DNA of 64,000 bases from Octopus sinensis (taxonomy: Eukaryota), in NCBI RefSeq assembly GCF_006345805.1, contig NC_043023.1, positions 16,554,001 through 16,618,000 on the forward strand, given 5' to 3'. Made by a program: the position numbers and the translations under genes. The notes beneath the pieces were generated by a model. That model saw nothing but the letters and a program-made list of their open reading frames with translations. It had not been told where the DNA came from and searched no databases. Shown in pieces: positions 23,608 to 51,445 of this stretch. Within the stretch, counting starts at the first letter, position 1. Every line of letters begins with the position of its first letter.

Positions 23608-23649
23608 CTACAAAGATAAACAGTAAAACATATGTCATTTATATACACT

Positions 23650-29935: not shown

Positions 29936-30534
29936 ATCAGCTGAGTCCATCGAGAAGCTGGCCTCACCGCTTTCCTTCAGCCAGGAAGGGCAAGCAGTTA
30001 CCTTATCTCTCTGGTTGCCACTGCAAAAGGGATCATGTGGTAGACATGTCTGAAAGGGCTGATGACCAGCAGTTGTCCTTTTGTTGAAGCTCAAATAATC
30101 TTTTTCAGGTTTGAAGAAGAGACAAATAAGGATAAAGAGAAAAGTAAGGGTGGAAGTGCTGGCTTCCATTGCAGTTTCTTGATAGATGGGTGAGAGAGGT
30201 GAGCATTGCCTGAGTGTGCACCTGTAGACTGGGAGAGGGCATCCACCCTGGTGGTCAGGGAGACCATGGATTTTGTGGGCTTTCTCCCTGTGTGACTAGT
30301 TGCCATTGCAAAAGGGATCGTGTGATGGACATGTCTGAAAGCGCTGAAGACCAGCAATTGCCATTTTATCAAAACCCTAATAAACTTTTTCAGGTTTCAC
30401 TTGAAGAGGAAAATCAGGGTGGAGAGGTAAGTGCTGGCTTCCAAGCAGTTTGTTGAAAGGTGGGTGAGCATTACCTGAGTGAATGGGCCTTCTTTCAGAG
30501 TGTACCTGTATATTGGAGAGGAAAGACCGGGAGA

Positions 30535-31405
30535 CGGCATCAACCCGCTACGGAACAGATCAAGGTCTGAAAAATACAACAAACTACAGAAACCCATCAG
30601 GACAACAAATAATGGAAAAACAGTATGTGAAAGATTTAGGCATCCACATGGGAACCAGCCTAAAATTCAGAGAACACCTTGACTCAGTCTGTCTTACTGC
30701 AAGAAAGTACAGCGGGTGGATCTTGCACACCTTCAAATCAAGAGATACCTCAACAATGAAAACCCTCTGGAACAGTATGATACTTCCGAGGATTGACTAC
30801 TGTTCTCAGTTGTGGTCACCAACAACAAAAGGCCAACTATCTAAGATGGAATCGCTCCAAAGAAATTTTACCTCATACTTCTCAGAAACGAGGGACCTGG
30901 ACTATTGGCAAAGACTCAAAACCTTGAAGATGTACTCAATAGAAAGAAGATTTGAGCGATACCGAATTATATACATTTGGAAAATGATAGAGCAAAAGGT
31001 ACCAAACTTTGGTATCAAAACCTACCACTCACTGCGCCACGGAAGACGCTGCCAGCTACCACCAATCAACAAAAAGGCTGGCCAGGCAGCAAAAACCCTG
31101 CGAGAGTCAAGTCTGTTGGTTCGAGGAGCACAACTATTCAACTCCATTCCGGTACATGTCAGAAATCTATCAGGATGCAGTGTGGAATCATTCAATTTGC
31201 AGCTGGACAGATACTTAAGCACCATTAGAGATGAACCCCATCTCCCAGGATATACACAACGAGCACAAACTGACTCAAACTCGCTCCTACACATGTCAAA
31301 ATTAAACAGAGAATACAACCTGGCAACCACACCAGACTCGGAGGGTGGAGTCTTCGACTTGGCCTGAGCATGGACTCAAACTCAAATGAAATGAAATGAA
31401 ATGAA
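30535..31405 (+). mobile_element. 5'-truncated CR1-like LINE (RT C-terminus, (TGAAA)n tail), gene C specific
   Basis: ORF 30483-31367 with KDLGI, PRIDYCSQLWSP, LYSIERR-like motifs; tail gaaatgaaatgaaatgaaa. It interrupts a sequence that is contiguous in gene B (gggagagggcatccacc). Confidence 0.85.
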
Positions 31406-31617
31406 ACCCTGGTGGTCAGGGAGACCATGGATTTTGTGGGCTTTCTTTACGTGTAGCCCTTGAAAGTCCCCCCACTATCAGGGGTTTTACTTTGAATTTC
31501 TTTTATTCTTTGTATGACTTTTTACATGCTAAAACCCACACTGTACCCTCCCGAATGTTTTCCTTTGTGTTAGCCCTCTGTGGTTAATAAAGAAATTATT
31601 ATAAATCATTTCCTTAC

Positions 31618-31866
31618 TCTTTATATCCAAATCAATTTTTCCAACATTAAGGTTCTCATCTTCGAATTTCCAAGTCAAACATTTCTCAGTTACTTTTCTG
31701 ATCCAAAGCTTGGAGGTATCTCCACTATGTGTTACTTTATAGTCAGTGCCATCAGCGCATGTCCTGTCACATTCATATTTATAATTGTCGCACTTCCAAA
31801 CCACCGGTCGTTCCATATCAGATATTGTTATCGAAAGGGTGACGTTTCCATTGAGCACAGCAGTTC
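31618..31866 (-). CDS. Gene C Ig-like domain exon (249 nt, phase 1-1)
   Basis: Acceptor tttctttatttcag|GA, donor AAGA|gtaagg; (G)TAVLNGNVTLSITISDMERPVVWKCDNYKYECDRTCADGTDYKVTHSGDTSKLWIRKVTEKCLTWKFEDENLNVGKIDLDIK. Same length and phase in all three paralogs. Confidence 0.85.
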
Positions 31867-32146
31867 CTGAAATAAAGAAATCAGTTAAGAAGTTTGCTTT
31901 TCAATCATACGGTTCTGGGTTCAGTCCCACTGCAGAGCACCTTGGGAAAGTGTCTTCTACTACAGCATCAGGCTTGTGAGTGGATTTTCAAGATGGAAAC
32001 TGAAAGAAGCCCATTGTATGTGTGTGTGTATATATATACATACACACTTGTGTGTTTCAAAGGCTCGTGAGTGTATTTGATAGATGGAAACTGAAAGAAG
32101 CCCATTGTTTATATATACATATATATACATATATATATATACATAT

Positions 32147-32205
<59 letters not shown>

Positions 32206-32820
32206 CATATATATATAGGCGCAGGAGTGGCTGTGTGGTAAGTAGTTTGTTTACCAACCCCATGGTTCCGGGTTCAGTCCCACTGCGTGGCACCCTGGGC
32301 AAGTGTCTTCTACTGCAGCCTGTGTGGATTTGGTAGACGGAAACTGAAAGAAGCCTGTTGTTTGTTTATATGTGTGCTTGTTTCTCACTACCACTTGCCA
32401 ATAAGTATTGGTGTGTCTACGTCCCAGTAACTTAGTGGTTCAGCAAAAGAGACCAATAGAATAAGTCCTGGGGTCAATTCATTCAACCGGAAACCCTTTA
32501 AGGCAGAACATCAGCATCATTATGATGCCCCCTGTTCCATGCTTTGTGGATAAGAGTTTTTCATTCTCAACAGTAGGATGCTCTTCCTGTCACAAACCTT
32601 CATCTGTTTCCAAACAAGGCTATAACATCCCATATATACACACAGTGGGCTCCTTTTAGCTCCTGTCTACCTAATCCACTCACAAGGCTTTTGCTGGCCT
32701 GGGGCTATAGTGGAGGACACTTAAACAAGGTGCCATACAGGGGGACTGGACCTTAAATTATGCGCTTGGAAAGAAAAGTTCCTAATCACAGCCAGGCCTT
32801 CACCTCACGTCCAAATTTAA

Positions 32821-33350
32821 CCCTTTAGCATTTAAACTAGTGAATATCATCATCATCATCGTTTAACATCCGCTTTCCATGCTAGCATGGGTTGGACGAT
32901 TTTGACTGAGGGCTGGCGAACCAGATGGCTGCACCAGGCTCCAATCTTGATCTGGCAGAGTTTCTACAGCTGCATGTCCTTCCTAACGCCAACCACTCCG
33001 AGAGTGTAGTGGGTGCTTTTTATGTGCCACTGGCACGGGGGCCCCTCAGGTGGTACTGGCAAAGACCTCGCTCGAATCTTTTTACACATGCCACCGGCAC
33101 AGGTGCCAGTAAGGTGACGTTGGTAACGATCACGCTCGAATGGTGCCTAGTGATATCAGATCCAAGTACTCTACTTGTCTGATGTTCAAACTAGCCATAT
33201 CTGACCTCTCCCATCTAAACTACAATGTCATTCTGGAAATAAAGCATCACATCATTGAAATCTCAAAGCTATGAGATAATCCATGATTAATCCAAAACAT
33301 TGAGAATAAAAAAGGATTACATTTGACCGAATAATCTGAATGCTAAAGGG
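32821..33350. mobile_element. piggyBac-type MITE (TTAA|CCC...GGG|TTAA) interrupted by an RTE tail
   Basis: ttaa-ccctttagcatt at 32817 and aatgctaaaggg-ttaa at 33354; RTE 3' UTR (minus) at ~32845-33135. Confidence 0.65.
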
Positions 33351-33599
33351 TTAATAGTTTTGCCCCTGGAAATTAAAAGGGAAAATGTGCAATAGAGACC
33401 ATCAAAAGAAATTAGACATCTAATTACACTCAGCCTAATGAGTTTTAATTTAATGAGATTTATGTTTACTGGAACATAACTTCATCAGACATGGGTGTAC
33501 CCCTGATTAAACCATGTCCCTATCCACTCACTCCCACCCACCCTTATATAATGCAGGGTCACTGCAGTAAGACACGGTTTCCTGTCCTTCTATCATACC

Positions 33600-33995
33600 C
33601 ATTTCTTTACTACCCATAAGGGGCTAAATGAGGACAGACAAACGGATTAAGGCGATTACATCGACCCCAGTGCGTAACTTGTCCTTAATTTATCGATCCC
33701 GAAAGGATGAAAGACAAAGTCAACCTCGGCGGAATTCGAACTCAGAACGTAAAGACAGACGAAATACCTATTTCTTTACTACCCTCAAGGGGCTAAACAT
33801 AGAGGAGACAAACAAGGGCAGACATAGGTATTAAGTCGATTACATCGACTCCAGTGCATAACTGGTACTTATTTAATCAACCCCAAAAGGATGAAAGGTA
33901 AAGTCGACCTTAGCGGAATTTGAACTCAGAATGTAGCGGCAGACGATATACCGCTAAGCCTTTTCGCCCGCCGTGCTAACGATTCTGCCAGCTCA
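33600..33995 (-). mobile_element. SINE family N tandem units (shared with gene B, 49780-50300)
   Basis: Consensus match; orthologous position in both paralogs. Confidence 0.7.
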
Positions 33996-34312
33996 CCTGT
34001 GTTTCTATCATACCTGGTATACCTCTCAACACCTGACATAAAACCATCTCCCTCTCTACTATGCTCTTCAGTGAAGGTTTGTTTCCTTCCTCTTCCTTTG
34101 CCTTTCCCGTTATTTGGTGACTTCACTAGGGGCCAGTTATGTGCAAAGAAAGGCTCCAGTGCACTGTAAAATGATTGGCACCGAAAAGGGGTCAATGATG
34201 CCAGCATGGAACGTGGACCTTGAATGACGGAGGATAAGCATCGTAACCATAATCCTCTTTAGAATGACAATCATAATCCCAGAGAAATGGAAACCAATTC
34301 AGTAGTGTTTAT

Positions 34313-34710
34313 ATCATCCTCATTGTTTAACGTCCACTTTCCATGCTAGCATGGGTTGGATGGATCGACCGGGGTCTGTGAAGCCAGAAGGCTGCACCAG
34401 GCCCAATCTGATCTGGCAATGTTTCTACAGCTGGATGCCCTTCCTAACGCCAACCACTCCGTGAGTGTAGTGTAGTGGGTGCTTTTTATGTGCCAGGTGA
34501 GGCTGGCAAACGGCCAAGATCGGCTGGTGCTTTTTACATGCCACTGGCACGGAGGCCCGTCGGGGCGGCGCTGGCCACGTTCCGATGGTGCTTTTTACGT
34601 GCCACCGGCACTGGTATCACAGCTACAATTTCCATTGATGTTGATCGATTTTGATTTTGATTCCACTTGCCTCAACAGGTCTTCACAAGTAGAGTTTTGT
34701 GTCCCAAGAA
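34313..34710 (-). mobile_element. RTE 3' UTR fragment, absent from gene B
   Basis: Matches the RTE tail; gene B joins 50605-50610 without it. Confidence 0.7.
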
Positions 34711-35086
34711 GGAAAGGTATGCATAATAAAAAAGGAAAGGTGTGCAATAATAAAAAAATGCACCCACCACACTTTGTAAAGGGGTCAGTGTTAGGAAGGT
34801 CATCAAGAAATCGAAACCTTGCCAATGCCTGCAAAGGAGCCTGCCACAATGCTGTGGCTTGTTGGATCCATGGCAAGATTGAAGGTGGCCATTTTATAAG
34901 TACCCCCACAAGCCATCTTGACCCTGGTTAAAACCCACTGCTCTAGTGTTTCCTCAATGTGTATTTCTGGCTCTTTAGCCCTTCTCGATGGTCAGAATAA
35001 AAACTTTAAAGAAACCAAAAGCAAAATAGTGACTAAAAGCTTTGAATTAAGAGAAAGAAATAGAAGACAGAACTGAAAAGGTAATG

Positions 35087-35514
35087 GGATCTTTTCGGTT
35101 TGAACGGCAGTTTTTTCTAGCGGTGTCATATGAAATTGTCACCCATAATTATGACCCTAGTATCGATCTATTGCATTTCAATCTGTTTTAGGGTTAAAGT
35201 TAGGATTAGGGGTGGGGGAAGGGTATCTTTCCTTCTTCAGAAACGTAAATAAACTCAATCTGTTTCTTAAACGAGGGACATATTCATACGGCACAGAATG
35301 TGCTTTTTTTTACCTCAATAGACGTCATTGATTGGTTGAAATTGCAGAAATTGAAGGAAAAAAAACAACAAATATCTTACAACTATAGAATTTTCCCGAT
35401 AAAGCCAAGAGAAAAAGATGTTTTATAAACACATTCTACCAGTATACGAAGTTTAAACGTGTCTAGTTACGTGGAAATTATTTTTAAAAACTGCCGGTCA
35501 AACGGAAAAGATCC
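35087..35514 (+). mobile_element. MITE, 428 bp, ~28-bp TIRs, 8-bp TSD (hAT/Merlin/P class); parent of the 146-bp satellite
   Basis: aggtaatg|ggatcttttcggtttgaacggcagtttt ... aaaactgccggtcaaacggaaaagatcc|aggtaatg. Confidence 0.85.
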
Positions 35515-35565
35515 AGGTAATGTCTAGTTTAAAAGGGGAAAAAGGTTTGTTTATCCATTATTTAC

Positions 35566-35604
35566 CACTTTGCTTAATTTCATAACTTGCCGCACTTGCC
35601 AAAC
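35566..35604 (-). CDS. Gene C 39-nt mini-exon (end of signal peptide + mature N-terminus)
   Basis: Acceptor ttttcatcttttacag|GT, donor G|gtaaat; (C)LASAASYEIKQS(G), phase 1-1. Needed because joining exon 1 directly to the Ig exon would create TGA. Confidence 0.8.
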
Positions 35605-36471
35605 CTGTAAAAGATGAAAACAAATTTTTGATTTTAAGATGAAATTATTCAAAATATTGTGAATAAATGAACGTTACATTAGAAGGAAAATGGCTATTTC
35701 ATTGGCAGAGTTTCAGATCAGGATCTCCACAAGGGTTAGATTACTCTTACTCTTTACTTGTCTCAGCCACCTGACTGCGGCCATGCTAGAGCACCGCCTT
35801 TAGTCGAGCAAATCGACCCCGGGACTTATTCTTTGTAAGCCCAGTACTTATTCTATCGGTCTCTTTTGCTGAACCGCTAAGTGACGGGGACGTAAATACA
35901 CCAGCATCGGTTGTCGAGCAGTGCTACGGGGACAAACACAGACACACAAACACATATATATACGACGGGCTTCTTTCAGTTTCCGTCTACCAAATCCACT
36001 CACAACGCTTTGGTCGGCCCGGGGCTATAGCAGAAGACCCTTGCCCAAGATGCCACGCAGTGGGTAAAAAGTACCTGTCAAAACAGAGATAGACCAATTT
36101 ATGTGGGTGCCCTATTCCAGACCCCTGTCAAATGGCAGACTGACAAATAAACCTTTACCGAAAAGGATTTTGCCATGGTTTTCGAGGGCTTAGTGCAAAA
36201 AAAAAAATCGGTCTGGGGCTGGGTAGAGAAGGGATTCAGGTGAAAAAAATGACTGAAACAAGTAAAAGAGTATATATTTTAGTGTTTGTATATTATTACA
36301 TCAAAGGTTAATGTAGAAAAAATTTAGTTATTACACACACATTAATACCGACAAATCCTAAGTTTCATGTGAGACAACCAATTTTTTTTTTAATAAATTT
36401 TCAAAAATTGTTTTTTTTCATAAAAAGCTTTCTCCTATCATCTTTAAAAATATATAATAGAGAAACAATTC

Positions 36472-37711
36472 TTAACCCTTTTGATACCAACCTGGCTGAA
36501 ACCACCTCTGACCCTGTAGTACAAATGTCTTGTTTTCATAAGTCTTGAATTAAAATCTTCCACCAAACCTTAGTCACAATTTATGTTCCTAATACTAGCT
36601 TAATGATGACTAAATTATTTACTAAATTCTTTGTTATATTTAAAATTAATTGAAAGAAAGAAACACAGAAAATCTCAACAGAAATATGGTAACAAAAGGG
36701 TTAAAAATATATAATAGAGAAACAATTCTTAACCCTTTTGATATGAACCTGGCTGAAACCACCTCTGACCCTGTAGTACAAATGTCTTGTTTTCAAAAGT
36801 TTTGAATTAATATCTTCCACCAAACCTTAGTCACAATTTATGTTCCTAACACTAGCTTAATAATAACTAAGTTATTTTACTAAATTCTTTATTATATTTA
36901 AAATAATTGAAAGAAACACAGAGCATCTCAACAGAAATATGGTAACAAAAGGCTTAAAAATATATAATAGAGAAACAATTCTTAACCTTTTGTTACCAAC
37001 CCGGCTGAAACCGGCTCTGGCTCTGAGTACAAATGTCTTGTTTTCATAAGTTTTGAATCAAAATCTTCCACCAAACCTTAGTCACAATTTATGTTCCTAA
37101 CACTAGCTTAACAATAACTAAGTTATTTTACTAAATTCTTTGTTATATTTAAAATTAATTGAAAGAAACACAGAACATCTCAACAGAAATATGGTAACAA
37201 AAGGCTTAAAAATATATAATAGAGAAACAATTCTTAACCCTTTTGTTACCAACCCGGCTGAAACCACCTCTGACCCGTAGTACAAATGTCTTTTTTCATA
37301 AGTTTTGAATTAAAATCTTCCAACAAACCTTAGTCACAATTTATGTTCCTGACACTAGCTTAATGATAACTAAGTTATTTTACTAAATTCTTTGTAATAT
37401 TTAAAATAATTGAAAAGAAACATAGAGCATCTCAACAGAATATGGTAACAAAAGGCTTAAAAATATATAATAGAGAAACAATTCTTAACCTTTTGTTACC
37501 AACCCGGCTGAAACCAACTCTGACCCTGTAGTAAAATGTCTTGTTTTCATAAGTCTTGAATGAAAATCTTCCACCAAACCTTAGTCACAATTTATGTTCC
37601 TAACACTAGCTGAATGATGACTAAGTTATTTTACTAAATTCTTTGTAATATTTAAAATAATTGAAAGAAACACAGAGCATCTCAAAATAAATACAGTGAC
37701 GAAAGGCTTAA
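36472..37711. repeat. Five tandem ~252-bp units (TTAA-flanked MITE + 22-bp host spacer)
   Basis: Units start ~36472, 36729, 36982, 37234 and 37485; each is ttaacccttttg[a/t]tacc ... ggtaacaaaagg[g/c]ttaa + aaatatataatagagaaacaattc. Confidence 0.8.
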
Positions 37712-37858
37712 GTGTGTTATGAAAAAAACCCATTTGAAAAGTCCCCATCAAAACAGAGAAAACCCAATTGATGTAGGACGTATTTCAGATTTGTGTCCAC
37801 CTGTATAGGGGTAATTAACAAGAGTGAATTATGAAGAAAAAGAATAATAAAAACTTAC

Positions 37859-37895
37859 AAAATAATGCAGACAAACAGAACTTTAGAATGTCCAT
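37859..37895 (-). CDS. Gene C first coding exon (signal peptide start)
   Basis: Acceptor gttgtttttcag| at 37921/37920, ATG at 37895, MDILKFCLSALF, donor T|gtaagt, phase 1. Confidence 0.8.
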
Positions 37896-38817
37896 GATCT
37901 GTGAAAATAATTTTCTAAACCTGAAAAACAACAAAAATATTTCAGTTCCACTAATTTCACACAAGCAAACAATAGTAGATATCTAATTAAGAGTCATCGT
38001 CATCATCATTATTATCGTCGAACGTCCGTAATCTTAACGGATGATACTAAAAATTAAATGCTTTAGTTTCACTTTCATAAATATAATCTTAACTCTCTGA
38101 TGTGTCAGAGAAATTTCGCTTAATAATACGCAATTTTTTCTTCATAAATTTGATAAGATTTTAATTACATTATGTATTTGTCCTTCATACAGAAAAATCA
38201 AACGTTGTTTACCGTTTTTCCGGGTGTGAAAACCTAGTTTAGGGAATCGCTCGCCTGAAATCGTCCACAAATTTTCAAGATATCACGGGAGAAATACGAA
38301 AATGAAAGTGTTAAAGAGAGACAATTGATGAGATGACTCATATAAACGGAACCTTTCCATCGATCCGATCCGATCCGATTCGGTAGAATGTGTCGTATAA
38401 AACATCTTTTACTCTGAGTGTTGTTGAGAAAAATTTGTATTTTCGAAGTTATTTCGTTTTAAAGTTGGTGTATTTCGGTAATTTTAACCAATCAATGACG
38501 TGAATAAAATTACTGCGGTTCTTTGTCGACTTCCGGCGGTGTATACATTTCGTTTGTCACTGTTATTTATGGACCTATTTTATCTCAATTACGTTTGTAT
38601 GAATAAATAAACGAATCTATCTGAAGCATGTTTATTTCATGACAGCACCACCATCGTTCGGGCATTTCTACTGCTTTTAGGGTTTTTTCAGCTATTTTCG
38701 GAAAGACGTTTTTGTCCTCCCTCCTCTTCCAATTTCTTCATAAATAAATAATAGTGAAATTATTGTATACAGTGCTCAGGTGCACCACAACTTGTCAAAA
38801 GTGCGTATAAAGCATAT

Positions 38818-39680
38818 ATGATTGCAGATGTACCTTGAAATCAAGAGGACAGATCCTGATGTCTACAACTCTTTCCTGCAATCAGACCTAGACACAATGC
38901 AGCAATGGATCACAGACTGGCAACTGAAACTGGCTGTGGACAAGTGTACCACCATGCATTTTGGGAGAAAAACCCTGCGTTCACTTACTCCCTCCACAAC
39001 ACTGATATCAAGAAATCCTCTTGCGAACGTGACCTAGGCATCACTGTCAGCAGTGATTTGCGTTGGTCAAAGCATATCTCTAAGATTGTCAGGAAGGCCG
39101 AGGGTGTCTTGGCATCACTCAGCAGGTCTTTTGTTAGCCGCTCTCCAGCCATCTATTTAAAACTGTATACAGCTATGGTACGACCACACTTGGAATTCGC
39201 ATCATCAGTTTGGAACCCCTATCTTGCACAGAACATTGACCTCCTGGAATCTGTCCAGAGACGTGCAACCAAACGCATACCCTCCATCAGACACCTACCA
39301 TATTCTGAGCGCCTTCCCTGGGCATGGATTCACTGAAGCTCCGGCGTTTGGCGACGGACTTGGTAAACACCCACAAAGTTATCAACCACCTCACCAACAA
39401 CAACACTGACCACCTTTTTGATCTCCATGTGTCTAACACACGTGGACATGCCTACAAAGTCAGAAAACAATACAGCTCCCATGACTTTCGGAAACATTTT
39501 TTCACGCTCAGAGTTGCTGAAGCATGGAATAAACTGCCTGCATCAGTTGTTGACTGCCATGACACTGCATCCTTTAAGGCCCTCATGCTTTCCGAAATCC
39601 GCCGAAACTACACCTGATTATATATACACTTTAGATGAGTTGTAGTGCACCTGAGCACTGTACACAATTATTATTATTAT
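38818..39680 (+). mobile_element. 5'-truncated CR1 LINE (RT C-terminus + 3' UTR)
   Basis: ERDLGITV, VRPHLEFASSVWNPY, LESVQRRATK, TRGHAYK, FFTLRVAEAWNKLP in frameshifted ORFs; (ATT)n tail. Confidence 0.9.
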
Positions 39681-39705
39681 ATATATGTGTGTGTGTGTGT
39701 GTGTA

Positions 39706-39783
39706 TTAATAAATAATGAAATTATTGTATACAGTGCTCAGGTGCACCACAACTTGTCAAAAGTGCGTATAAATCATATATGA

Positions 39784-39839
<56 letters not shown>

Positions 39840-40145
39840 ATTAATAATAATGAAATTATTGTATACAGTGCTCAGGTGCCCCCACAACTTGTCAAAAGTG
39901 CGTATAAAGCATTTGCAAGTAATGTACAATGTCTGGGGAGTGAACAGTGTATGAGTCAGATAGATGCTTGCTTGTGTGTATGGAGGGGAGAAGCTCAGGT
40001 GTGGTGTTGGCGAATCTCAGGAAGCATGGAAGTTTTGAAGGATGCAGTGATCCGACAACTAACAACTGATGCCGGCAGTTTGTTCCATGCTTCAGCACTC
40101 TAAGCGTGAAAAAATGTTTCCTAAAGTCATGGAAGGAGCTGTGCT
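39706..40145 (-). mobile_element. CR1 3' end fragments in opposite orientation (tail-to-tail)
   Basis: ORF 39892-40098 (-) is homologous to the + copy; the 70-bp terminal piece repeats at 38745-38817, 39706-39780 and 39843-39910. Confidence 0.75.
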
Positions 40146-40720
40146 GTTTGTTTTCATTTTCACTTTTATTTTCCGTAACCTAACACCAAAACCCTAAATT
40201 AAAGGAGGGAAGGGTTCCGTTTACATCTCGCCATGTGACCTGAAATAGCAGCCAAATCCCTGATTTTTTCTTTCTTATTACAGCGGAAATCGCGGTTCTA
40301 GAACATGGCATTTTCCACGTTACTCTCTCTTCTACTCTTTTACTTTTTTTTTAGTCATTCGACTGCGGCCATGCTGGAGCACCGCCTTTAGTCGAGCAAA
40401 TCGACCCCGGGACTTATTCTTTGTAAGCCCAGTACTTATTCAATCGGTCTCTTTTGCCAACCGCTAAGTGACGGGGACATAACACACCAGCATCGGTTGT
40501 CAAGCAATGCTAGGGAGACAAACACAGACACACAAACACACACGCACAACACACATATGTGTGGCTGTGTGGTAAGTAGCTTGTTTACGAACCACATGGT
40601 TCCGGGTTCAGTCCCACTGCGTGGCACCTTGGACAAGTGTCTTCTACTATAGCCTCGAGCCGACCAAGCCTTGTGAGTGGATTTTGTAGACGGAAACTGA
40701 AAGAAGCCCGTCGTATATAT

Positions 40721-40754
<34 letters not shown>

Positions 40755-41539
40755 GACGGGCTTATATATATATATATATACGACGGGCTTATATATTATA
40801 TATACGACGGGCTTCTTTCAGTTTCTGTCTACCAAGTCCACTCACAAGGCTTTGGTCGGCCCGAGGCTATAGTAGAAGACACTTGTCCAAGGTGCCACGC
40901 GTGAGACTGAACCCGGAACCATTTGGTTGGTAACAAGCAACTTACCACTCCAAAAAATTACTTTTTTTTGTGTGTTTTATTTACTTTGTTAAACAAAAAT
41001 TATTTACTTTGCGCAAAAAAATTTGGCATAACTTCGGTATAAGTACCAGATACATTTCAAGAAAGTGTTTTTTTTTATATATGGGGGGTTTGTCTTAGGG
41101 TTAGGGTTAGGGGTGGGAGAAAAGGGTTTCTTTTATCTTCAGAAATGTAAACAAAGTCACGTGTGTACTTATACCGAAGGATCGCCAAATATTTATTTTG
41201 TGTTTTATTTACTTAGCTAGGTTAGTCGTTGTAGGATCGACTAGTCACGACTAGCTAGCGCGGATGCCTGACTACGTGAGTGCGCGCACCTGGACTACTG
41301 TTCTCAAGTAGTACCGAAGGAGTGTTTGTCCAGATAGGACTACGCAGCCACAGAGGATATATATATGAGGACATGAAATGTAAAAGCTAGACTAGATTAT
41401 TTATGCGCAACTCCATTGTCTCCCGAGACACAAAAAGGATGCCAACGTCATCATCTACAATCTGTATCATTCAACACCCGACTTATGTGAGTGACATCAG
41501 CCAAAACACTGACTTTTTTTTTGTTTTTTCAAATAAAAT

Positions 41540-42175
41540 GCTTACATACATACATACACACATACACACATACTTACATGCATACTTACGTTCCATACGT
41601 ACGTACATACATACATACATACATACATACCACACATACATACATACATACTTACGTACATACGCACATACATAGATACTTACATACATACATACATATG
41701 AACATACATACATACATAGATACACCACACACATACATACACAATACGCACATACACACATATATACACACATACATACATACATACACACATACATACA
41801 TACATACATACATACATACATACGTACATACACACATACATACATGCATGCATGCATGCATACATACATACATACATACACACACATACATACATACACA
41901 CACACATACATACATACATACACACACATACTTACATACATACTTACGTTCCATACGTACGTACATACTATACATACATACATACATACATACTTACATA
42001 CTTACATACATACATACTTACATACATACTTACGTTCCATACGTACGTACATGCATACATACATACGCACATACACACATATACACACATACATACATAC
42101 ATACACACACACATACATACATACATACATACACACATACGTACATACATACGTACATACACACATACATACATG
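41540..42175. repeat. (CATA/CA)n compound microsatellite
   Basis: Directly visible; the internal motif catacttacgttccatacgtacgtac recurs three times. Confidence 0.95.
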
Positions 42176-42634
42176 CATTTCGTTTTGGGGTTCGGTTTGC
42201 AGGATTTTCATGCGAGTTCGTGCTGAAGCAAGGTGCTTTGTTATTTAACACACTCACCGTTAAAGTTTCCGCTAATTACCTATTTTTCCTAAAGTTTTCT
42301 TTGCCTCTTCCAACCTTTTCAATAGTTGTTGACTCTGTCCGTTATCCGAGCTGCTTTCTTTTCACCAATCTGGTTTTTTTTTTGTTTGTTCTTTAATTAA
42401 TTGCTAATTGTTATTTTTAACAAAAGAGTTTGAAACTTTGGGGCGTGTTCCTTCGTTTTGTCTCGCCAAAATCATAACAAGAACTCCGTTGTTTCTGTGA
42501 CGACTCGACAATTCACTCGGATATTTTCGTTACATCCGTAATAGCTGCTAAATGGGATGAGGAGGAGAAATAGCTTATGGGTTGTGTGTGTGTGCTTGTT
42601 CGTTAAAGTTCTTTTCTACTCTACTGGCACAACG

Positions 42635-44020
42635 CCCAAAATTTGAACTCAGAACGTTACGACAGACGAAATACCTATTTCTTTACTACCCACAAGGGGT
42701 TAAACACAGAGAGGACAAACAAGACACCAAACGGTTTAAGTCGATTATATCGATCCAGTGCGTAACTGGTACTTAATTTATCGACCCCGAAAGGATGAAA
42801 GGCAAAGTCGACCTCGGCGGAATTTGAACTCACAACGTAACGGCAGACGAAATACCTATTTCTTTACTACCCACAAGGGGTTACACACAGAGAGGACAAA
42901 CAAGGACAGACGTAGGTATTAAGTCGATTACATCGACCCCAGTGCGTAACTGGTACTTAATTTATCAACCCTGAAAGCATGAAAGGCAAAGTCGACCTCG
43001 GCGGAATTGAACTCACAACGTAACGGCAGACGAAATACCTATTTCTTTACTACCCACAAGGGGTTAAACACAGAGAGGACAACAAGGACAGACGTAGGTA
43101 TTAAGTCGATTACATCGACCCCAGTGCGTAACTGGTACTTATTTTCAACCCTGAAGCATGAAAGGCAAAGTCGACCTCGGCGGAATTTGAACTCACAACG
43201 TAACGGCAGACGAATACCTATTTCTTTACTACCCACAAGGGGTTAAACACAGAGAGGACAAACAAGGACAGACGTAGGTATTAAGTCGATTACATCGACC
43301 CCAGTGCGTAACTGGTACTTAATTTATCAACCCTGAAGCATGAAAGGCAAAGTCGACCTCGGCGGAATTTGAACTCACAACGTACGGCAGACGAAATACC
43401 TATTTCTTTACTACCCACAAGGGTTAAACACAGAGAGGACAAACAAGGACAGACGTAGGTATTAGTCGATTACTCGACCCAGTGCGTAACTGGTACTTAA
43501 TTTATCAACCCTGAAAGCATGAAAGGCAAAGTCGACCTCGGCGGAATTTGAACTCACAACGTAACGGCAGACGAAATACCTATTTCTTTACTACCCACAA
43601 GGGGTTAAACACAGAGAGGACAAACAAGGACAGACGTAGGTATTAAGTCGATTACATCGACCCCAGTGCGTAACTGGTACTTATTTATCAACCCTGAAAG
43701 CATGAAAGGCAAGTCGACCTCGGCGGAATTTGAACTCACAACGTAACGGCAGACGAAATACCTATTTCTTTACTACCCCAAGGGGTTAAACACAGAGAGA
43801 CAACAAGGACAGACGTAGGTATTAAGTCGATTACATCGACCCCAGTGCGTAACTGGTACTTAATTTATCAACCCTGAAAGCATGAAAGGCAAAGTCGACC
43901 TCGGCGAATTTGAACTCAGAACGTTACGACAGACGAAATACCTATTTCTTTACTACCCACAAGGGGCTAAACAAAGATAGACAAACGGATTCGATTACAA
44001 CGACCCCAGTGCATAACTGG
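42635..44020 (-). repeat. Head-to-tail array of ~8 truncated SINE-N units (~181-bp period)
   Basis: gaaataccta recurs at ~42668, 42849, 43032, 43212, 43392, 43572, 43755 and 43935. Confidence 0.9.
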
Positions 44021-44135
44021 TATTATTTAGTCGAGGAATGAAATTTTGAGATGCTGAATTTTGCCTTTTTTTTTTTTTCCAGCTTCGTAATCACCGTACC
44101 CGAAAAGGGGTTTCTGTAAAAAATAAATAAATAAA

Positions 44136-45640
44136 GGCGTAGGAGTGGCTGTGTGGTAAGTAGCTTGCTTACCAACCACATGGTTCCGGGTTCAGTCCCA
44201 CTGCGTGGGACCTTGGGCAAGTGTCTTCTACTATAGCCTTGGGCTGACCAAAGTCTTGTGAGTGGATTTGGTAAACGGAAACTGAAAGAAGCCCGTCGTA
44301 TATGTATATAGGTGCAGGAGTGGCTGTGTGGTATGCAGCTTGCTTACCAACCACATGGTTCCGGGTTCAGTCCCACTGCGTGGCACCTTGGGCAAGTGTC
44401 TTCTACTATAGCCTCGGGCCGACCAAAGTCTTGTGAGTGGATTTGGTAAACGGAAACTGAAAGAAGCCCGTCGTATATATGTATACGTATGGTATATGTT
44501 TGTGTGTCTGTGTTGGCGTCCCCCTACATTGCATGACAACCGATGCTGGTGTGTTTACGTCCCCGTAACTAAGCGGTTCGGCAAAAGAGACCGATAGAAT
44601 AAGTACTGGGCTTACAAAGAAAAGACCTGGGATCGATTTGCTCGACTAAAGGCGGTGCTCCAGCATGGCCGCAGTCAAATGACTGAAACAAGTAAAAGAG
44701 TAAAAGAGATAAAGCAGGGTTGAGGTAGAAAAGGAAGTCTAGCCCCTAATGGTTTGGCCCTTCATCTGTTCCTCCAACATAAACAAAAAAGAAAAAACAA
44801 CCACTTGCCTGAGAACCAGTATGGAAATGCCACCAGTGTGGCAATGATGATGTGGCATCTGCTGTTGATGTCTTGACGCTTGGGTGAACAGCAGGAGGGA
44901 GACTTCTTGAACAATGGGATCAGTTGGAGAAATCAATCCCAGGACTTATTCTTTGTAAGCTGGCATTTATTTTATCGGTCAAGATCATGGGTATATAAAC
45001 ATACTAACACAGCTTGACAAGTGACGGTAGGAATGGGGGTAGGGGAAAACACACACCTAAAGAAATTATAGGCGCAGGAGTGGCCGTGTGGTAAGTAGCT
45101 TGCTTACCAACCACATGGTTCCGGGTTCAGTCCCACTGCTTGGCACCTTGGGCAAGTGTCTTCTACTATAGCCTCGGGCCGACCAAAGCCTTGTGAGTGG
45201 ATTTTGTAGACGGAAACTGAAAGAAGCCCATCGTATATAGGCACAGGAGTGGCTGTGTAGTAAGTACTTGTTTACCAACCACATAGTTCCGGTTCAGTCC
45301 CACTGCGTGGCATCTTGGGCAAGTGTCTTCTGCTATAGCGTCGGGCCGACCAAGCCTTGTGAGTGGATTTGGTAGACGGAACTGAAAGAAGCCTGTCGTA
45401 CATGTGTATATATATATGTATGTATGTGTGCGTTTGTGTGTCTGTGTTTGTCCCCCTAGCATTGCTTGACAACCGATGCTGGTGTTACGCGTCCCTGTCA
45501 CTTAGCGGTTCGGCAAAAGAGACTGATAGAATAAGTACTGAGCTTACAGAGAATGAGTCTCGGGGTCGAGTTGCTTGACTAAAGGCGGTGCTCCAGCATG
45601 GCCGCAGTCAAATGACTGAAACAAGTAAGAGATATATATA
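44136..45640 (+). mobile_element. Cluster of SINE family C copies (tandem heads + full copies) around a unique 44710-45060 segment
   Basis: Repeated ggcgcaggagtggctgtgtgg heads separated by (TA)n; the unique segment is homologous to 54470-54800. Confidence 0.75.
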
Positions 45641-46062
45641 TATACTCTTTTACTTGTTTCAGTCATTTGGAGCACCGCCTTTAGTCGATCAAATCGACCC
45701 CAGAACTTATTCTTTGTTACGGGAACGTAAACACACCAGCACCGGTTGTCAAGCGATGTTGGGGCGGACAAACACAGACGCATGGCGGGCTTCTTTCAGC
45801 TTCCGGGTTTTAGAAACCTGGATGTTGATTCGACGATGACGCTGACAGCATAAATCGAGTGGCAGTAATTTAAACAGTAAAAGTTTATAACAAGGCTGGT
45901 GTACATCAAAATCAAATTTATAAAATTTCTTATTTATTAATTATAGGTGGCAGGCATGGTTATGTGGTAAAATGCTTGCTTCCTACCCACATAGCACTGG
46001 ACTAAATATCAAAGGAGTGTCCTTCCAGCACCTGAGATTATTACTGGTATTTCTTAAAATAT

Positions 46063-46196
46063 TTAAATGATGACGGCAGTTATCATCCCAATGACAAGGA
46101 TGGACTTGTTTCTGAGGCTGCTGGTTCCGTGTGCTCCACCTGCAAAAGATTTCAATGTGATATCATCATATGCCACAGATATTGGTGTCATATCAC
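46063..46196 (-). CDS. Gene B terminal exon (canonical acceptor lost; cryptic in-frame acceptor at 46139)
   Basis: DMTPISVAYDDITLKSFAGGAHGTSSLRNKSILVIGMITAVII*. The homologous acceptor reads ctttgTGT instead of ctttgTAG; ttttgcag|GT GGA is in the right phase. AATAAA (-) at 45933-45938. Confidence 0.6.
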
Positions 46197-46344
46197 ACAC
46201 AAAGATAAACAATAAAACATATCATTTATATACACTCTTCATATCAACTTGCTCAAGACTGCCCTTGTTTCCATAGTGAAAATTCCCTAATTTAAAGTGA
46301 GCTAAATTAAAACCTTTCATCAAAATATCATGTTAATGTTAATT

Positions 46345-47560
46345 AATAAGGATAAAGAGAAAAATAAGGGTGGAAGTGCTGGCTTCCATTGCAGTTTCTT
46401 GATAGATGGGTGAGAGAGGTGAGCGTTGCCTGAGTGTGCACCTGTAGACTGGGAGAGGGCATCCACCCTGGTGGTCAGGGGGACCATGGATTTTGTGGGC
46501 TTTCTCCCTGTGTGACTAGTTGCCATTGCAAAAGGGATCATGTGGTAGACATGTCTGAAAGGGCTGATGACCAGCAGTTGTCCTTTTGTTGAAGCTCAAA
46601 TAATCTTTTTCAGGTTTGAAGAAGAGACAAATAAGGATAAAGAGAAAAGTAAGGTGGAAGTGCTGGCTTCCATTGCAGTTTCTTGATAGATGGGTGAGAG
46701 AGGTGAGCGTTGCCTGAGTGTGCACCTGTAGACTGGGAGAGGGCATCCACCCTGGTGGTCAGGGAGACCATGGATTTTGTGGGCTTTCTCCCTGTGTGAC
46801 TAGTTGCCATTGCAAAAGGGATCGTGTGATGGACATGTCTGAAAGGGCTGAAGATGGGTGAGAGAGGTGAGCGTTGCCTGAGTGTGCACCTGTAGACTGG
46901 GAGAGGGCATCCACCCTGGTGGTCAGGGGTACCATGGATTTTGTGGGCTTTCTCCCTGTGTAACTAGTTGCCATTGCAAAAGGGATCATGTGATGGACAT
47001 GTCTGAAAGCGCTGAAGACCAGCAACTGCCATTTTGTCAAAACCCTAATAAACTTTATCAGGTTTCACTTGAAGAGCAAAATCAGGGTGGAGAGGTAAGT
47101 GCTGGCTTCCAAGCAGTTTGTTGAAAGGTGGGTGAGAGAGGTGAGCATTACCTGAGTGAATGGGCCTTCTCTCAGAGTGTACCTGTATATTGGAGAGAAA
47201 AGACTGGGAGAGGGTATCCACCCTGGTGGTCAGGGGGACCATGGATTTTTTGGGCTTTCTCCCTGTGTGACTAGTTGCCATTGCAAAAGGGATCGTGTGA
47301 TGGACATGTCTGAAAGCGCTGAAGACCAGCAATTGCCATTTTGTCAAAACCCTAATAAACTTTTTCAGGTTTCACTTGAAGAGGAAAATCAGGGTGGAGA
47401 GGTAAGTGCTGGCTTCCAAGCAGTTTGTTGAAAGGTGGGTGAGCATTACCTGAGTGAATGGGCCTTCTCTCAGAGTGTACCTGTATATTGGAGAGGAAAG
47501 ACTGGGAGAGGGCATCCACCTTGGTGGTCAGGGGGACCATGGATTTTGTGGGCTTTCTTT
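46345..47560. repeat. Irregular tandem expansion (~6 partial copies) of an intronic segment in gene B
   Basis: ctgggagagggcatccaccctggtggtcaggg...ccatggattttgtgggctttc recurs at ~46450, 46735, 46900, 47205 and 47505; about 2 copies in gene C and 1 diverged copy in gene A (62420). Confidence 0.8.
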
Positions 47561-47729
47561 ACGTGTAGCCCTTGAAAGTCCCCAAACTATCAGGGATCTT
47601 ACTTTGACTTTCTTTTATTCTTTGTATGACTTTTTACATGCTAAAACCCACACTGGACCCTCCCGAATGTTTTGCTTTGTGTTAGCCCTCTGTGGTTAAT
47701 AAAGAAATTATTATAAATCATTTCCTTAC

Positions 47730-47978
47730 TCTTTATCTCCAAATCAATTTTTCCAACATTATGGTTGCCATCTTCAAATTTCCAAGTCGAACAATTCTTA
47801 GTTATTTTTCTGATCCAAAGTATGGCGGTATCTCCAGTATGTCTCACTTTATAGTTAGGGCCATCAGCGCATATCATGTTACATTGATATTTATAATAGC
47901 CGCACTTCCAAACCACCGGTCGTTTCATATCGGGTGTTGTTATCGTAAGGATGAGCTTTCTATTGAGAACAGCAGGTG
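47730..47978 (-). CDS. Gene B Ig-like domain exon (249 nt, phase 1-1)
   Basis: tctttatttcag|CA ... AAGA|gtaagg; (A)PAVLNRKLILTITTPDMKRPVVWKCGYYKYQCNMICADGPNYKVRHTGDTAILWIRKITKNCSTWKFEDGNHNVGKIDLEIK. Confidence 0.85.
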
Positions 47979-48019
47979 CTGAAATAAAGAAATCAGTTAA
48001 GAAGTTTGCGTTTCAATCA

Positions 48020-48640
48020 TACGGTTTTGGGTTCAGTCCCACTGCAGAGCACCTTGGGAAAGTGTCTTCTACTACAGCATCAGGCTTGTGAGTGGATTTT
48101 CTAGATGGAAATTGAAAGAAGCCCATTGTGTGTGTGTGTGTATATATATACATACACACTTGTGTGTTTCAAAGGCTCTTGAGTGGATTTGATAGATGGA
48201 AACTGAAAGAAGCCCATTGTTTATATATATATATATATAGGTGCCGGAGTGGCTGTGTGGTAAGTAGCTTGTTTACCAACCACATGGTTCCGGGTTCAGT
48301 CCCACTGCGTGGCACCTTGGGCAAGTGTCTTCTACTGTAGCCTCAGGCCGACCAAAGCCTTGTGAGTGGATTTGATAGATGGAAACTGAAAGAAGCCCAT
48401 TGTTTATATGTATATATATATATAGGTGCAGGAGTGGCTGTGTGGTAAGTAGCTTGTTTACCAACCACATGGTTCCGGGTTCAGTCCCACTGCGTGGCAC
48501 CTTGGGCAAGTGTCTTCTACTGTAGCCTCAGGCCAACCAAAGCCTTGTGAGTGGATTTGATAGATGGAAACTGAAAGAAGCCCATTGTTTATATATATAT
48601 ATATATATATATAGGCGCATGAGTGGCTGTGTGATAAGTA
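48020..48640 (+). mobile_element. Tandem SINE family C heads
   Basis: Repeated ~180-bp head units separated by (TA)n; fewer copies at the homologous 31905-32500. Confidence 0.75.
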
Positions 48641-50954
48641 GTTGGAGAGTGGGGGAGAAACAGAAGAGTGATGAGGAGGTTGTTACATCCTCAAAACGTA
48701 AAAGAAAGGCAGGCAACAATGGTGACCCACCGAAAGACCCCGGGAGCTGCGGGAGAAAAAGAGGACCCGTTGTGTACACCACAGGAACCTCACCCTCCCG
48801 CGGCCCAGGGAAAAAAAAGAAAAAAGAGAAACGGAATGCCGGCGGCGGATTGTAACACGCGGACGGCGTCTTCCAAGCCTCCTCAGGCGGGCGTGCCGCC
48901 GGAGGATAAATGTGTGGTCCTCTTCCACAAAGGAGGAACCATTGAAAATGAGATAAGAAAAATGAAAAGGAGAGGCCAATGGGAGGGACTTTGGTCCTGC
49001 ACGGAGGACCCTGAGTGGCCTTCGCAGGTGGCTGCGGAGGTCCTATGGGATAGCGATCTGTGCAGGATCGGGAATTGTGGTCTTGCCTGGAACTGGCTGA
49101 GTGCTTCAATGAAGCAAGAGAGCTAGTCGGCCGGGTGACCTGAATTTTTTGTATATTTTGAAGGAACATTATCTGGCAAAGACCTTGCTCGAATCTTTTT
49201 ACACGTGCCACCGACACAGGTGCCAGTAAGGCGACATTGGTAAAGATCACGCTCGAATGGTGCCCTTTTACGTACCACTGGCACAGAGCCAGTTGGCTGC
49301 TCTGGCAACGATCACGCTCGGATGGTGCCTAGTGATATCAGATCCAAGTACTCTACTTGTCTGATGTTCAAACTAGCCATATCTGACCTCTCCCATCTAA
49401 CCTACAATGTCATTCTGGAAATAAAGCATCACATCATTGAAATCTCAAAGCTATGAGATAATCCATGATTAATCCAAAACATTGAGAATAAAAAAGGATT
49501 ACATTAATCTGAACGCTAAAGGGTTAATAGTTTTTGCCCCTGGAAATTAAAAGGGAAAATGTGCAATAGAGACCATCAAAAGAAATTAGACATCTTATTA
49601 CACTCAGCCTAATGAGTTTTAATTTAATGAGATTTATGTTTACTGGAACATAACTTCATCAGACATGGGTGTACCCCTGATTAAACCATGTCCCTATCCA
49701 CTCACTCCCGCCCACCCTTATATAATGCAGGGTCACTACAGTAAGACACGGGTTCCTGTCCTTCTATCATACCCTTTCTTTACTACCCATAAGGGGCTAA
49801 ATGAGGACAGACAAATGGATTAAGTGGATTATATCGACCCCTGGACATGTTTTACACAGTGAACTGGAAACAAATGATAATATATATATTTCTTTATTGT
49901 CCACAAGGGGCTAAACATAGAGGAGACAAACAAGGACAGACGTAGGTATTAAGTCGATTACATCGACCCCAGTGCGTAACTGGTACTTAATTTATCGATC
50001 CCGAAAGGATGAAAGGCAAAGTCGACCTCGGCGGAATTTGAACTCACAACATAACGGCAGACGAAATACCTATTTCTTTAGTACCCACAAGGGGCTAAAC
50101 ATAGAGGAAACAAACAAGGACAGACATAGGTATTAAGTCGATTACATCGACCCCAGTGCGTAACTGGTACTTAATTTATCGATCCCGAAAGGATGAAAGG
50201 CAAAGTCGACCTCGGCGGGATTTGAACTCACAACGTAACGGCAGACGAAATACCGGTAAGCCTTTCACCCAGGGTGCTAACGATTCTGCCAGCTCACCTG
50301 TCTATCTATCATACCTGGTATACCTCTCAACACCTGACATAAGGCCATCTCCTTCTCTACTATGCTCTTCAGTAAAGGTTTGTTTCCTTCCTCTTCCTTT
50401 GCCTTTTCCCGTTATTTAGTGACTTCACTAGGGGCCAGTTATGTGCAAAAAAAGGCTCCAGGGCACTGTAAAATGATAGGGTCCGAAAAGGATTCAATGA
50501 TGCCAGCATGGAACGTGGACCTTGAATGACGGAGGATAAACATGATAACCCTAATCCTCTTTAGAAAGACAATCATAATCCCAGAGAAATGGAAACCAAT
50601 TCAGTGGTGGTGCAATAATAAAAAAATGCACCCACCACACTTTGTAAAGGGGTCAGTGTTAGGAAGGTCATGAAGCAATCGAAACCTTGCCAATGCCTGC
50701 AAAGGAGCCTGCCACAATGCTGTGGTTTGTTGGATCCATGGCAAGATTGAAGGTGGCCATTTTATAAGTACCCCCACAAGCCATCTTGACCCTGGTTAAA
50801 ACCCACTGCTCTAGTGTTTCCCCAATGTGTATTTCTGGCTCTTTAGCCCTTCTCGATGGTCAGAATAAAAACTTTAAAGAAACCAAAAGCAAAATAGTGA
50901 CTAAAAGCTTTGAATTAAGAGAAAGAAATAGAAGACAGAACTGAAAAGGTAATG

Positions 50955-51406: not shown

Positions 51407-51445
51407 CATTTTGGTGGATACGATAACCTTTTGCACTCGTCAAAC
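51407..51445 (-). CDS. Gene B 39-nt mini-exon
   Basis: tttcatcttttacag|GT ... G|gtaaat; (C)LTSAKGYRIHQN(A), phase 1-1. Confidence 0.8.

Follow-up and report, generated by a model that had tools for sequence, protein, structure and literature searches.

Several immunoglobulin superfamily (IgSF) gene families arranged in tandem are known to diversify rapidly, among them KIR/LILR, CEACAM/PSG, SIGLEC and NITR in vertebrates, the FREPs of Biomphalaria, the VCBPs of amphioxus and Alr1/Alr2 of Hydractinia. 'Accelerated evolution' of exons lying between conserved introns is known in turn from the isozyme genes of crotaline snake venom phospholipase A2 (PLA2) and from the conotoxins. To our knowledge, cephalopods possess no adaptive immunity of the antibody type, and their surface recognition molecules are very poorly characterised. 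Here we describe a 64,000-nucleotide stretch of Octopus sinensis genomic DNA (contig NC_043023.1, positions 16,554,001 to 16,618,000; hereafter the window, whose numbering is used throughout unless another locus is named). The minus strand of the window carries three paralogous 249-nt exons encoding an immunoglobulin (Ig)-like domain, which we term A, B and C; all three have the same phase and canonical boundaries (cag before the exon, gtaagg after it).

Comparison of B and C revealed an exon that has changed faster than the non-coding DNA around it, and changed almost exclusively in its amino acids, as would be anticipated if selection were driving duplicate receptors apart. We consider it probable that positive selection has acted on the exposed ectodomain of these young duplicates, mainly on the C lineage, within an octopod-specific family of IgSF surface proteins, and that its effects are overlaid on gene conversion.

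Divergence of B and C is concentrated in the ectodomain

The Ig-like exons of B (31618–31866, minus strand, phase 1 to 1; the Ig exon of LOC115225109) and C (47730–47978, minus strand) differ at 35 of 249 nucleotides and contain no indels relative to one another. Thirty of the changes are replacements and five are silent, such that 29 of 83 residues are altered. Nei–Gojobori counting over the 82 whole codons (S = 50, N = 196, Sd = 5, Nd = 29) gave a replacement divergence per site (dN) of 0.165 and a silent divergence (dS) of 0.107, with a dN/dS ratio of 1.54; one extra replacement falls in the split first codon.

The surrounding DNA is considerably more similar. A minus-strand block of 722 nt could be aligned without gaps between B (31406–32127) and C (47518–48239). 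It contains 52 mismatches, 35 of them within the exon and only 17 in the 473 positions outside. Measured over the introns abutting the exon, 19 of 455 sites differ (4.2%); the exon, by comparison, differs at 14.1% of its sites (Fisher P = 4e-6). The divergence at replacement sites exceeds that of non-coding DNA in the unit about 3.5–4-fold (0.165 versus 0.042 in the flanks, P = 6e-6), and it ends a few bases from either splice site. Colinear blocks across the whole of the B and C units are 89–99% identical, the intronic block 33091–33668 matching 49275–49841 at 94.5%; with exons removed, these blocks yield an estimated divergence of 4.6% (about 161 mismatches across about 3,530 aligned positions of non-coding DNA). 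Thus, the flanks of the B and C exons are typical of the unit rather than unusually conserved, and it is the Ig exon that is the outlier. Elsewhere in the coding sequence, the signal-peptide exon differs by one silent change and a 6-nt indel and the tail exon by approximately 5%, neither of which represents an acceleration.

An earlier sequence-only reading of this DNA had counted by hand about 35 differences in 249 nt, roughly 30 of them nonsynonymous and 5 synonymous, affecting 29 of 83 residues, and had judged by eye that long intronic blocks of the same duplication were well over 90% identical. All of these counts were reproduced, and alignment of exon and intron confirmed a contrast well beyond chance. 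Its proposal that dN/dS exceeds 1 fared less simply. The pairwise ratio of 1.54 does not attain significance; what supports the proposal in part is the elevation of replacements above the non-coding rate, together with the class of codons at an omega (dN/dS) of about 9 described below.

Replacement excess among six close paralogs

We extended the comparison to the exons and introns of six close paralogs, comprising B, C, a further O. sinensis copy termed D (LOC115225458, locus L001) and three copies from O. vulgaris (V1–V3, locus L003), all of them with the conserved flanks in common. Paralog A was excluded from the likelihood tests, since with dS above 1 it is too saturated for changes to be polarised reliably. 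The divergence of A from B and C (dS about 1.2–1.3; dN/dS about 0.21–0.24) indicates that the family has been constrained over the long run.

Across the 15 pairs among the six paralogs, dN/dS exceeded 1 in 13. Silent divergence (dS 0.02–0.16) was similar to that of the flanks (0.03–0.09), with dN higher at 0.05–0.21. Counts of silent against replacement changes alone reached significance in none of the 15 pairs. Replacement divergence, on the other hand, was significantly greater than flank divergence in the pairs B–C, C–D, C–V1, C–V2, B–D, B–V2, D–V1, D–V2 and V2–V3. A tree-free minimum of 0.301 substitutions per site was obtained for the exon and of 0.130 for the flanks, and within the exon the steps per site were 0.34, 0.33 and 0.24 at codon positions 1, 2 and 3 respectively.

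That third positions (0.24 steps per site) also lie somewhat above the flanks (0.13) might suggest a local mutational effect, whereby the exon mutates faster without any selection on the protein, whether through transcription- or structure-associated damage, CpG decay, biased gene conversion or targeted hypermutation. Several multi-nucleotide codon changes in exon 2 of the unit could be read in the same way. Silent divergence, however, was significantly above that of the flanks in none of the 15 pairs and the excess is limited to replacement sites, whilst neither the signal-peptide exon nor the tail exon of this transcript shows any acceleration. Exon and flanks have equal GC content (about 0.38–0.42) and few CpGs. 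GC-biased gene conversion and CpG decay were checked specifically as causes and were unsupported, since changes on the C lineage display no AT-to-GC bias (8 versus 10) and involve few CpG sites, rendering either effect unlikely. Overall we hold a mutational origin of the pattern to be very improbable.

Likelihood tests were performed on the six sequences using GY94-type code of our own writing rather than PAML. The single-ratio model M0 returned an omega of 1.7–2.1 (P = 0.02–0.07 against omega = 1). The selection model M2a was preferred to the nearly neutral model M1a with 2ΔlnL = 20.4–22.2 (P about 2–4e-5), whether the exon tree, the flank tree or a near-star tree was supplied, and assigned 7–9% of codons (8, 26, 41, 47 and 52) to a class with omega of about 9. 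Twenty-one simulations from the fitted M1a null produced no likelihood ratio statistic above 10.2 and no M0 omega above 1.54.

The exon encodes a divergent Ig fold with a candidate variable face

We sought to establish the nature of the encoded domain by structure prediction. Supplied with a 61-sequence family alignment, AlphaFold2 produced an eight-strand beta sandwich (predicted local distance difference test score (pLDDT) 95.3; predicted template modelling score (pTM) 0.86). The top matches of this model in the PDB by Foldseek were titin M1/I-set, obscurin Ig and antibody light-chain variable (VL) domains, each at a probability of 1.0 and with template modelling (TM) scores of 0.65–0.72. 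As modelled, the exon of B and C is a true but divergent Ig fold of I-set-like character. Sequence comparison gave a fainter signal. Pfam yielded no Ig match to the translated exons of A, B or C even at E values up to 10, the only hit being a sub-threshold one to CNRIP1, and a PDB sequence search with the family profile found only weak titin matches (E = 0.04). Some multi-domain relatives did exceed the gathering cut-off of 23.7 bits for the I-set family PF07679 (P0053, 35.5 bits; P0046, 35.8; P0067, 28.2).

The canonical disulfide between strands B and F is absent, strand B (VTLSIT) having no cysteine, while the tryptophan of strand C is kept (VVW). By sequence and DSSP assignment, two of the four cysteines are located at the ends of strands C and C', a third in the C'–D loop and the fourth immediately ahead of strand F; some distant relatives possess a cysteine within strand F (WYFCD). 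A, B and C share the four cysteines, VVW and the motif L-x-I-R-K-[VI]-T without change. Paralog D, by comparison, has AVW and LWIRNIT.

Differences between B and C are unevenly distributed over the fold. By DSSP, strands A, B, D and E account for differences at 8 of 21 positions and the loops for about 19 of 41, but strands C, C', F and G for just 2 of 23. Within the strands, variable residues 11, 13, 47, 49 and 54 (model numbering) are at alternating positions of the A-B-E-D sheet, and presumably face outward. On the predicted structure, this pattern fits an exposed, variable face paired with a conserved G-F-C-C' face.

Several claims of the sequence-only reading concerned this domain. The Ig-like character that it assigned to the exon is supported by the confident model and the Foldseek matches. 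The motifs that it described as invariant are so in A, B and C, though not in the wider family, as paralog D illustrates. The scaffold is conserved to the extent that C retains the four cysteines, the tryptophans and the hydrophobic core pattern; C nevertheless replaces four of the 20 best-conserved columns and a probable core isoleucine, as detailed below. The prospect that B might be a relaxed pseudogene was not borne out, since B is the conservative and annotated copy and the divergent one is C, whose exons and splice sites are intact. The label of diversifying ligand-binding receptor would be one interpretation of these sequences.

An exhaustive profile search retrieved 35 representative relatives. 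Those whose source was looked up all came from octopods (O. sinensis, O. vulgaris, O. bimaculoides and Argonauta hians), one Logan read-assembly sequence excepted, and the family members are all annotated as 'uncharacterized' or 'hypothetical'. In many, the domain is repeated in tandem two to five times ahead of a transmembrane segment and a short tail. A profile match judged to be bacterial (P0030) was rejected as a homolog; it is a HYR_4C repeat protein in which only a TW-F-D-GN stretch matches, a resemblance attributable to chance or to the level of the fold. Searches of a literature library found no paper mentioning these loci or this family.

Lopsided change on C, and alternatives to selection

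The changes separating B from C are not shared equally between them. Relative to the consensus of the other five paralogs, C carries 25.5 replacement and 2.5 silent changes, compared with 14 and 3 in B. Autapomorphies of C number 14 in the 249 exon positions and 6 in 346 positions of the flanks, a 3.2-fold enrichment (P = 0.009), and the majority of the C states occur nowhere else in the 17 closest domain sequences.

A number of results weigh against positive selection. Taken alone, the dN/dS of 1.54 between B and C is not significantly greater than 1 (z = 0.99, Fisher P = 0.27), and dS, resting on five changes only, does not differ significantly from dN. M2a placed the bulk of codons at an omega of about 1 instead of in a constrained class, an outcome to be anticipated were constraint relaxed as well. 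The family has also undergone widespread recombination or gene conversion. The four-gamete test is failed by 59 of 136 informative pairs of sites within the exon and by 118 of 300 within the flanks, and the trees conflict, the flanks pairing B with C and the exon pairing C with D and B with V3; the assumption of a single tree is consequently violated and the P values of the site models are optimistic. In exon 2, B (35566–35604, minus strand, LASAASYEIKQS) and C (51407–51445, minus strand, LTSAKGYRIHQN) differ at 13 of 39 nt, with two or three changes in each of three codons. Here silent divergence is high too (dS 0.62, dN 0.40) amid flanks that are about 97% identical, and selection on amino acids alone is thus an insufficient explanation. 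Finally, C alters four of the 20 best-conserved columns of the 61-domain alignment, namely E33Q, D35N, T37I and S53A, in and close to the YECDRTC motif; the four columns are each conserved in at least 85% of the family domains.

This last observation, by which YECDRTC has become YQCNMIC, is of particular relevance to the possibility that C, or both copies, became redundant and are decaying, such that the replacement excess is merely neutral drift under relaxed constraint. The close relatives of C carry none or one of such conserved-column changes. C additionally bears I16T in strand B, in place of the probable core isoleucine, and has lost an N-V-T sequon whilst gaining N-C-S. The conserved-residue changes of C may accordingly reflect a shift in function, or partial decay, and not diversification of the surface. 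The non-significant pairwise ratio and the bulk omega near 1 would also be expected of decay, and our first protein search returned products of B and D only, C being seen just inside the long multi-isoform model LOC115225115. Drift is nonetheless capped at the neutral rate, and a dN approximately 3.5–4 times the non-coding divergence of the unit (P about 5e-6) is not producible by loss of constraint. Nor would decay readily accommodate the concentration of C autapomorphies in the exon, the greater variability of codon positions 1 and 2 than of position 3 in the six paralogs, four exons of C with no stop, frameshift or splice-site loss, or the retention in C of its cysteines, tryptophans and core pattern. 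We regard relaxed constraint as decidedly unlikely to be the explanation.

The recombination evidence bears upon a second alternative, in which concerted evolution or exon exchange, through gene conversion or unequal crossing-over, repeatedly homogenised the non-coding DNA while the ectodomain exons kept, or imported, older sequence, so that the contrast between them is one of age and not of rate. Besides the four-gamete failures and the conflicting trees, exon 1 of C, with its FFCC insertion, and the exon 2 type of C are shared with D rather than with B, and exon 2 of B resembles a 'SYEI' type found in distant family members. Exon 2 looks to be an old exon lineage that was retained or imported while its introns were homogenised. 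Within the Ig exon, about 7 of 28 amino-acid differences between B and C are states present in other paralogs and were probably not newly created on either lineage. Moreover, the tail-exon blocks of A (59601–60020) and B (23206–23627) are 98.6% identical despite a 30% difference between their Ig exons, which points to a recent gene conversion confined to the 3' ends.

As an account of the Ig exon, however, this alternative appears unlikely. The exon is not demonstrably older than its surroundings, given that its dS of 0.107 (0.02–0.16 over the 15 pairs) is about that of the flanks. Old divergence within the family is rich in silent change (A versus B, dS 1.24 and dN/dS 0.21), in contrast to the 29 replacements and 5 silent changes in whole codons between B and C, and the majority of C states recur in none of the other closest domain sequences. 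Divergence that stops near both splice sites is likewise difficult to reconcile with unselected conversion tracts, which would ignore such boundaries. An exchange model would in any case still need selection to protect the diversity of the exon.

A gene unit of approximately 8 kb was duplicated recently to give the adjacent copies B and C. Since the duplication, or since the last homogenisation, non-coding DNA, signal peptide and tail have drifted by some 4–5%, and the two exons encoding the exposed ectodomain have diverged by 14–33%, the change in the Ig exon being almost wholly replacement. Positive selection for differing binding properties of the B and C Ig domains, operating chiefly in the C lineage and for the most part on loops and the outward A-B-E-D face, has probably driven this divergence, with occasional exchange of sequence patches among family members superimposed upon it. 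Such very young duplicates with an acceleration limited to exons are informative in that their introns provide an internal neutral yardstick.

Organisation of the gene units

Combining tblastn, annotated proteins and splice sites, we resolved the gene unit into four exons. Exon 1 contains the ATG and signal peptide; exon 2, of 39 nt, encodes the end of the signal peptide and the start of the mature chain; exon 3 is the Ig-like exon; and exon 4 encodes an optional stalk and then ..GAQGTSS-LRTKS-ILVIGMITAVII(YTF) before the stop. All features lie on the minus strand. The Ig exon thus sits in proteins bearing a signal peptide (MDILKFCLSALFCLASA...) and the tail ..GAQGTSS-LRTKS-ILVIGMITAVIIYTF. 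To the eye, the tail encoded by exon 4 looks like a signal for a glycosylphosphatidylinositol (GPI) anchor, with its small residues for attachment, a short polar spacer and a closing hydrophobic stretch of about 15 residues, a short transmembrane tail being the alternative; attachment to the cell surface by GPI would be the expected consequence.

Exon 1 of B, with the start codon and signal peptide (MDILKFCLSALF), lies at 37859–37895, and its exon 4 at 23474–23607, encoding the stalk and a hydrophobic C-terminal tail that ends ..GAQGTSSLRTKSILVIGMITAVIIYTF; an internal acceptor at 23559 gives a short form. C has its exon 1, which supplies the initiator ATG and the signal peptide (MDILKFFCCLSALF), at 53420–53462, and its exon 4 (46063–46139, GAHGTSSLRNKSILVIGMITAVII) exists as the short form only. 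The long-form acceptor of exon 4 reads TTTGTAG in A and B (23608–23614 in B), compared with TTTGTGTG in C (46190–46200) and D (L001, about 20335). C and D are restricted to the short form because the upstream long-form acceptor AG has been lost, in agreement with the annotation of D.

The spliced coding sequence of C is open over 408 nt (135 amino acids), from the ATG through four open exons. No stop codon, frameshift or lost start was found in the four exons of C, and its splice sites are AG/GT throughout, bar the optional long-form acceptor that is also missing from the annotated paralog D. Thus, C is no obvious pseudogene. The annotation assigns its exons to the 5' end of LOC115225115, exon 3 being identical to the first Ig domain of isoforms X1, X2, X4–X6, X8, X9 and X11–X14. 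The older paralog A is represented in the window by its Ig-like exon 3 (62995–63243), which has an open frame and canonical splice sites, and by exon 4 (59867–60000); exons 1 and 2 lie outside the window. None of the proteins that our searches retrieved contained the Ig exon of A.

The window is O. sinensis genomic DNA, and RefSeq LOC115225109 matches the translated B exon at 100%. At the nucleotide level, the Ig exons of B and C agree exactly with the reference chromosome CM016885.1 (locus L002), and the approximately 4 kb surrounding them contains 0–3 mismatches. The idea that the window derives from another allele or individual than the reference was rejected on these grounds; the remaining differences between the two reside in repeats and in assembly structure.

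B and C as predicted alternative first cassettes

The RefSeq model LOC115225115 spans 397 kb, with downstream exons beyond the window, and the following observations derive from that gene prediction. Among its 18 predicted isoforms, 11 start with exons 1 to 3 of C, three with exons 1 to 3 of B and one uses exons 1 and 2 of B only; in none of the 18 do the B and C Ig exons occur together. Downstream of the B or C cassette, a distant linker exon (LSRAQKYKITQS) leads into a shared body predicted to contain three to four more Ig domains and a transmembrane segment, and the same C-terminal transmembrane segment is present in 15 of the 18. B and C are each predicted to be joined either to this body or to a tail exon of their own. 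Short B isoforms that end in their own exon 4 are annotated separately as LOC115225109. The exon phases permit splicing of this kind, in that exons 1 and 3 end in phase 1 and exons of the exon 2 type accept phase 1.

These predictions raise the speculative possibility, which we consider doubtful, that B, C and perhaps A and further units are variable first cassettes with their own promoters, spliced in a mutually exclusive manner onto the constant body of a single octopod receptor locus in the fashion of the protocadherin and UGT1 genes. Selection would in that case drive apart the recognition specificities of the cassettes, be they immune, neuronal or concerned with self-recognition in skin and suckers, and the cassettes might also be released as GPI-anchored single-domain forms. 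Were the cassettes real, they would furnish one receptor with different membrane-distal Ig domains, which would explain selection for their divergence, and the architecture would constitute an independent molluscan invention of a variable–constant receptor gene organisation.

The 397-kb LOC115225115 model also encloses several repeated clusters of histone H2A, H2B, H3 and H4 genes, the IgSF and histone arrays being interleaved along this chromosome.

Repeats and assembly differences

The units are accompanied by a variety of repeats. A 146-bp satellite (23 copies, 96% matches; 25735–29098) fills much of intron 3 of B. The same satellite occurs near paralogous units in O. vulgaris (L003:41880–47374) and at locus D (L001:29580–30375), and therefore travels with the gene family. 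A 251-bp tandem repeat of five copies lies in intron 1 just downstream of exon 1 of B (36444–37711), with a shorter homolog in C (52812–53290). A 181-bp tandem repeat of 7.4 copies is situated between C and B (42640–43986), and a related two-copy stretch is found in an intron of C (49887–50254).

An element resembling a short interspersed nuclear element (SINE) of tRNA-derived appearance (...GGGCTTCTTTCAGTTTCC...GCAGTGGGACTGAACCCAGAACC...) was identified at 31867–32110, 47979–48220 and 63244–63480. In A, B, C, D and V1–V3 alike it extends as far as the AG and polypyrimidine tract preceding the Ig exon, and more copies are stacked upstream. Judged from these sequences, the 3' splice-site region of the Ig exon appears to be built on, or to adjoin, an old repeat insertion.

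Approximately 250 bp downstream of the B Ig exon is an open frame of 294 amino acids (30483–31367, plus strand) that is absent from C. It belongs to a B-only segment (30546–31406) that explains the 860-bp indel separating the B unit from the C unit, and we take it, by eye, to be the C-terminal part of a protein from a retrotransposon lacking long terminal repeats (non-LTR). Open reading frames at 4505–7977 (plus strand) and 55333–55797 (minus strand) were similarly presumed by eye to be reverse-transcriptase or endonuclease fragments of long interspersed nuclear elements (LINEs).

Two further differences from the reference concern the B array. RefSeq B proteins terminate in SILSLG, where the window (23540–23520) encodes ...SILVIGMITAVIIYTF before the stop, and there is a K/Q difference in the stalk. 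Working back from the proteins, one base fewer in reference exon 4 (CTTGTCATT to CTTTCATT) would produce the SILSLG terminus and eliminate the hydrophobic tail. An indel error in the older assembly is the probable source, in which case the annotated C-terminus of LOC115225109 is likely wrong. Separately, downstream of the B tail exon (L002:24563–34714) the reference carries a 97% copy of window positions 46242–36954, followed by another B-like unit (the start of LOC115225116). Window positions 1–23200 are unrelated in sequence to L002 at that point; either the tandem arrays differ structurally, or one of the two versions is mis-assembled.

Comparison with known systems

We compared the B and C genes with several described systems. 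They resemble the rapidly diversifying IgSF receptor families in being recent tandem duplicates with one exon per Ig domain, in the faster accumulation of replacements in the membrane-distal Ig domain than of changes at silent or intronic sites, and in a history of birth-and-death and gene conversion during which glycosylation sites have been gained and lost. Unlike those families, the octopus family was found only in octopods, and it is unrelated to them in sequence. Its domain lacks the B–F disulfide and instead has four cysteines in a C/C'-loop/E–F arrangement, and its proteins, known here from sequence, carry no extra domain of the fibrinogen or chitin-binding type.

The domain itself shares with the I-set (PF07679) domains of titin and twitchin the strand C tryptophan, the L-x-I-x-x-V pattern of strand E and a TM score of about 0.7. 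It departs from them in having no cysteine in strand B and only 10–20% identity to solved structures. Furthermore, whereas titin and twitchin are intracellular muscle proteins, the octopus proteins are predicted to be extracellular and anchored.

In its contrast of rates the locus resembles the PLA2 and conotoxin genes, in which recent paralogs are closer to one another in their introns and signal-peptide region than in the exons of the mature protein, and replacements equal or outnumber silent changes. Those genes, however, encode secreted toxins rather than an Ig-fold protein with a membrane-anchor signal, and the octopus contrast is about 3–4-fold and concentrated on one lineage.

With the clustered protocadherins and UGT1A, the parallel lies in the predicted isoforms of LOC115225115 that start with a C or B cassette, each furnished with an ATG and a signal peptide. 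The cassettes seen here number two or three, as opposed to dozens, and each comprises three exons together with a terminal tail exon of its own, such that it can stand alone as a gene.

On this comparison, B and C add a further case of fast-diversifying tandem genes for Ig-domain surface proteins. An octopod-only tandem Ig family whose exons outrun neutral DNA is a candidate for a lineage-specific recognition system, whether directed at pathogens, at other cells or at self.

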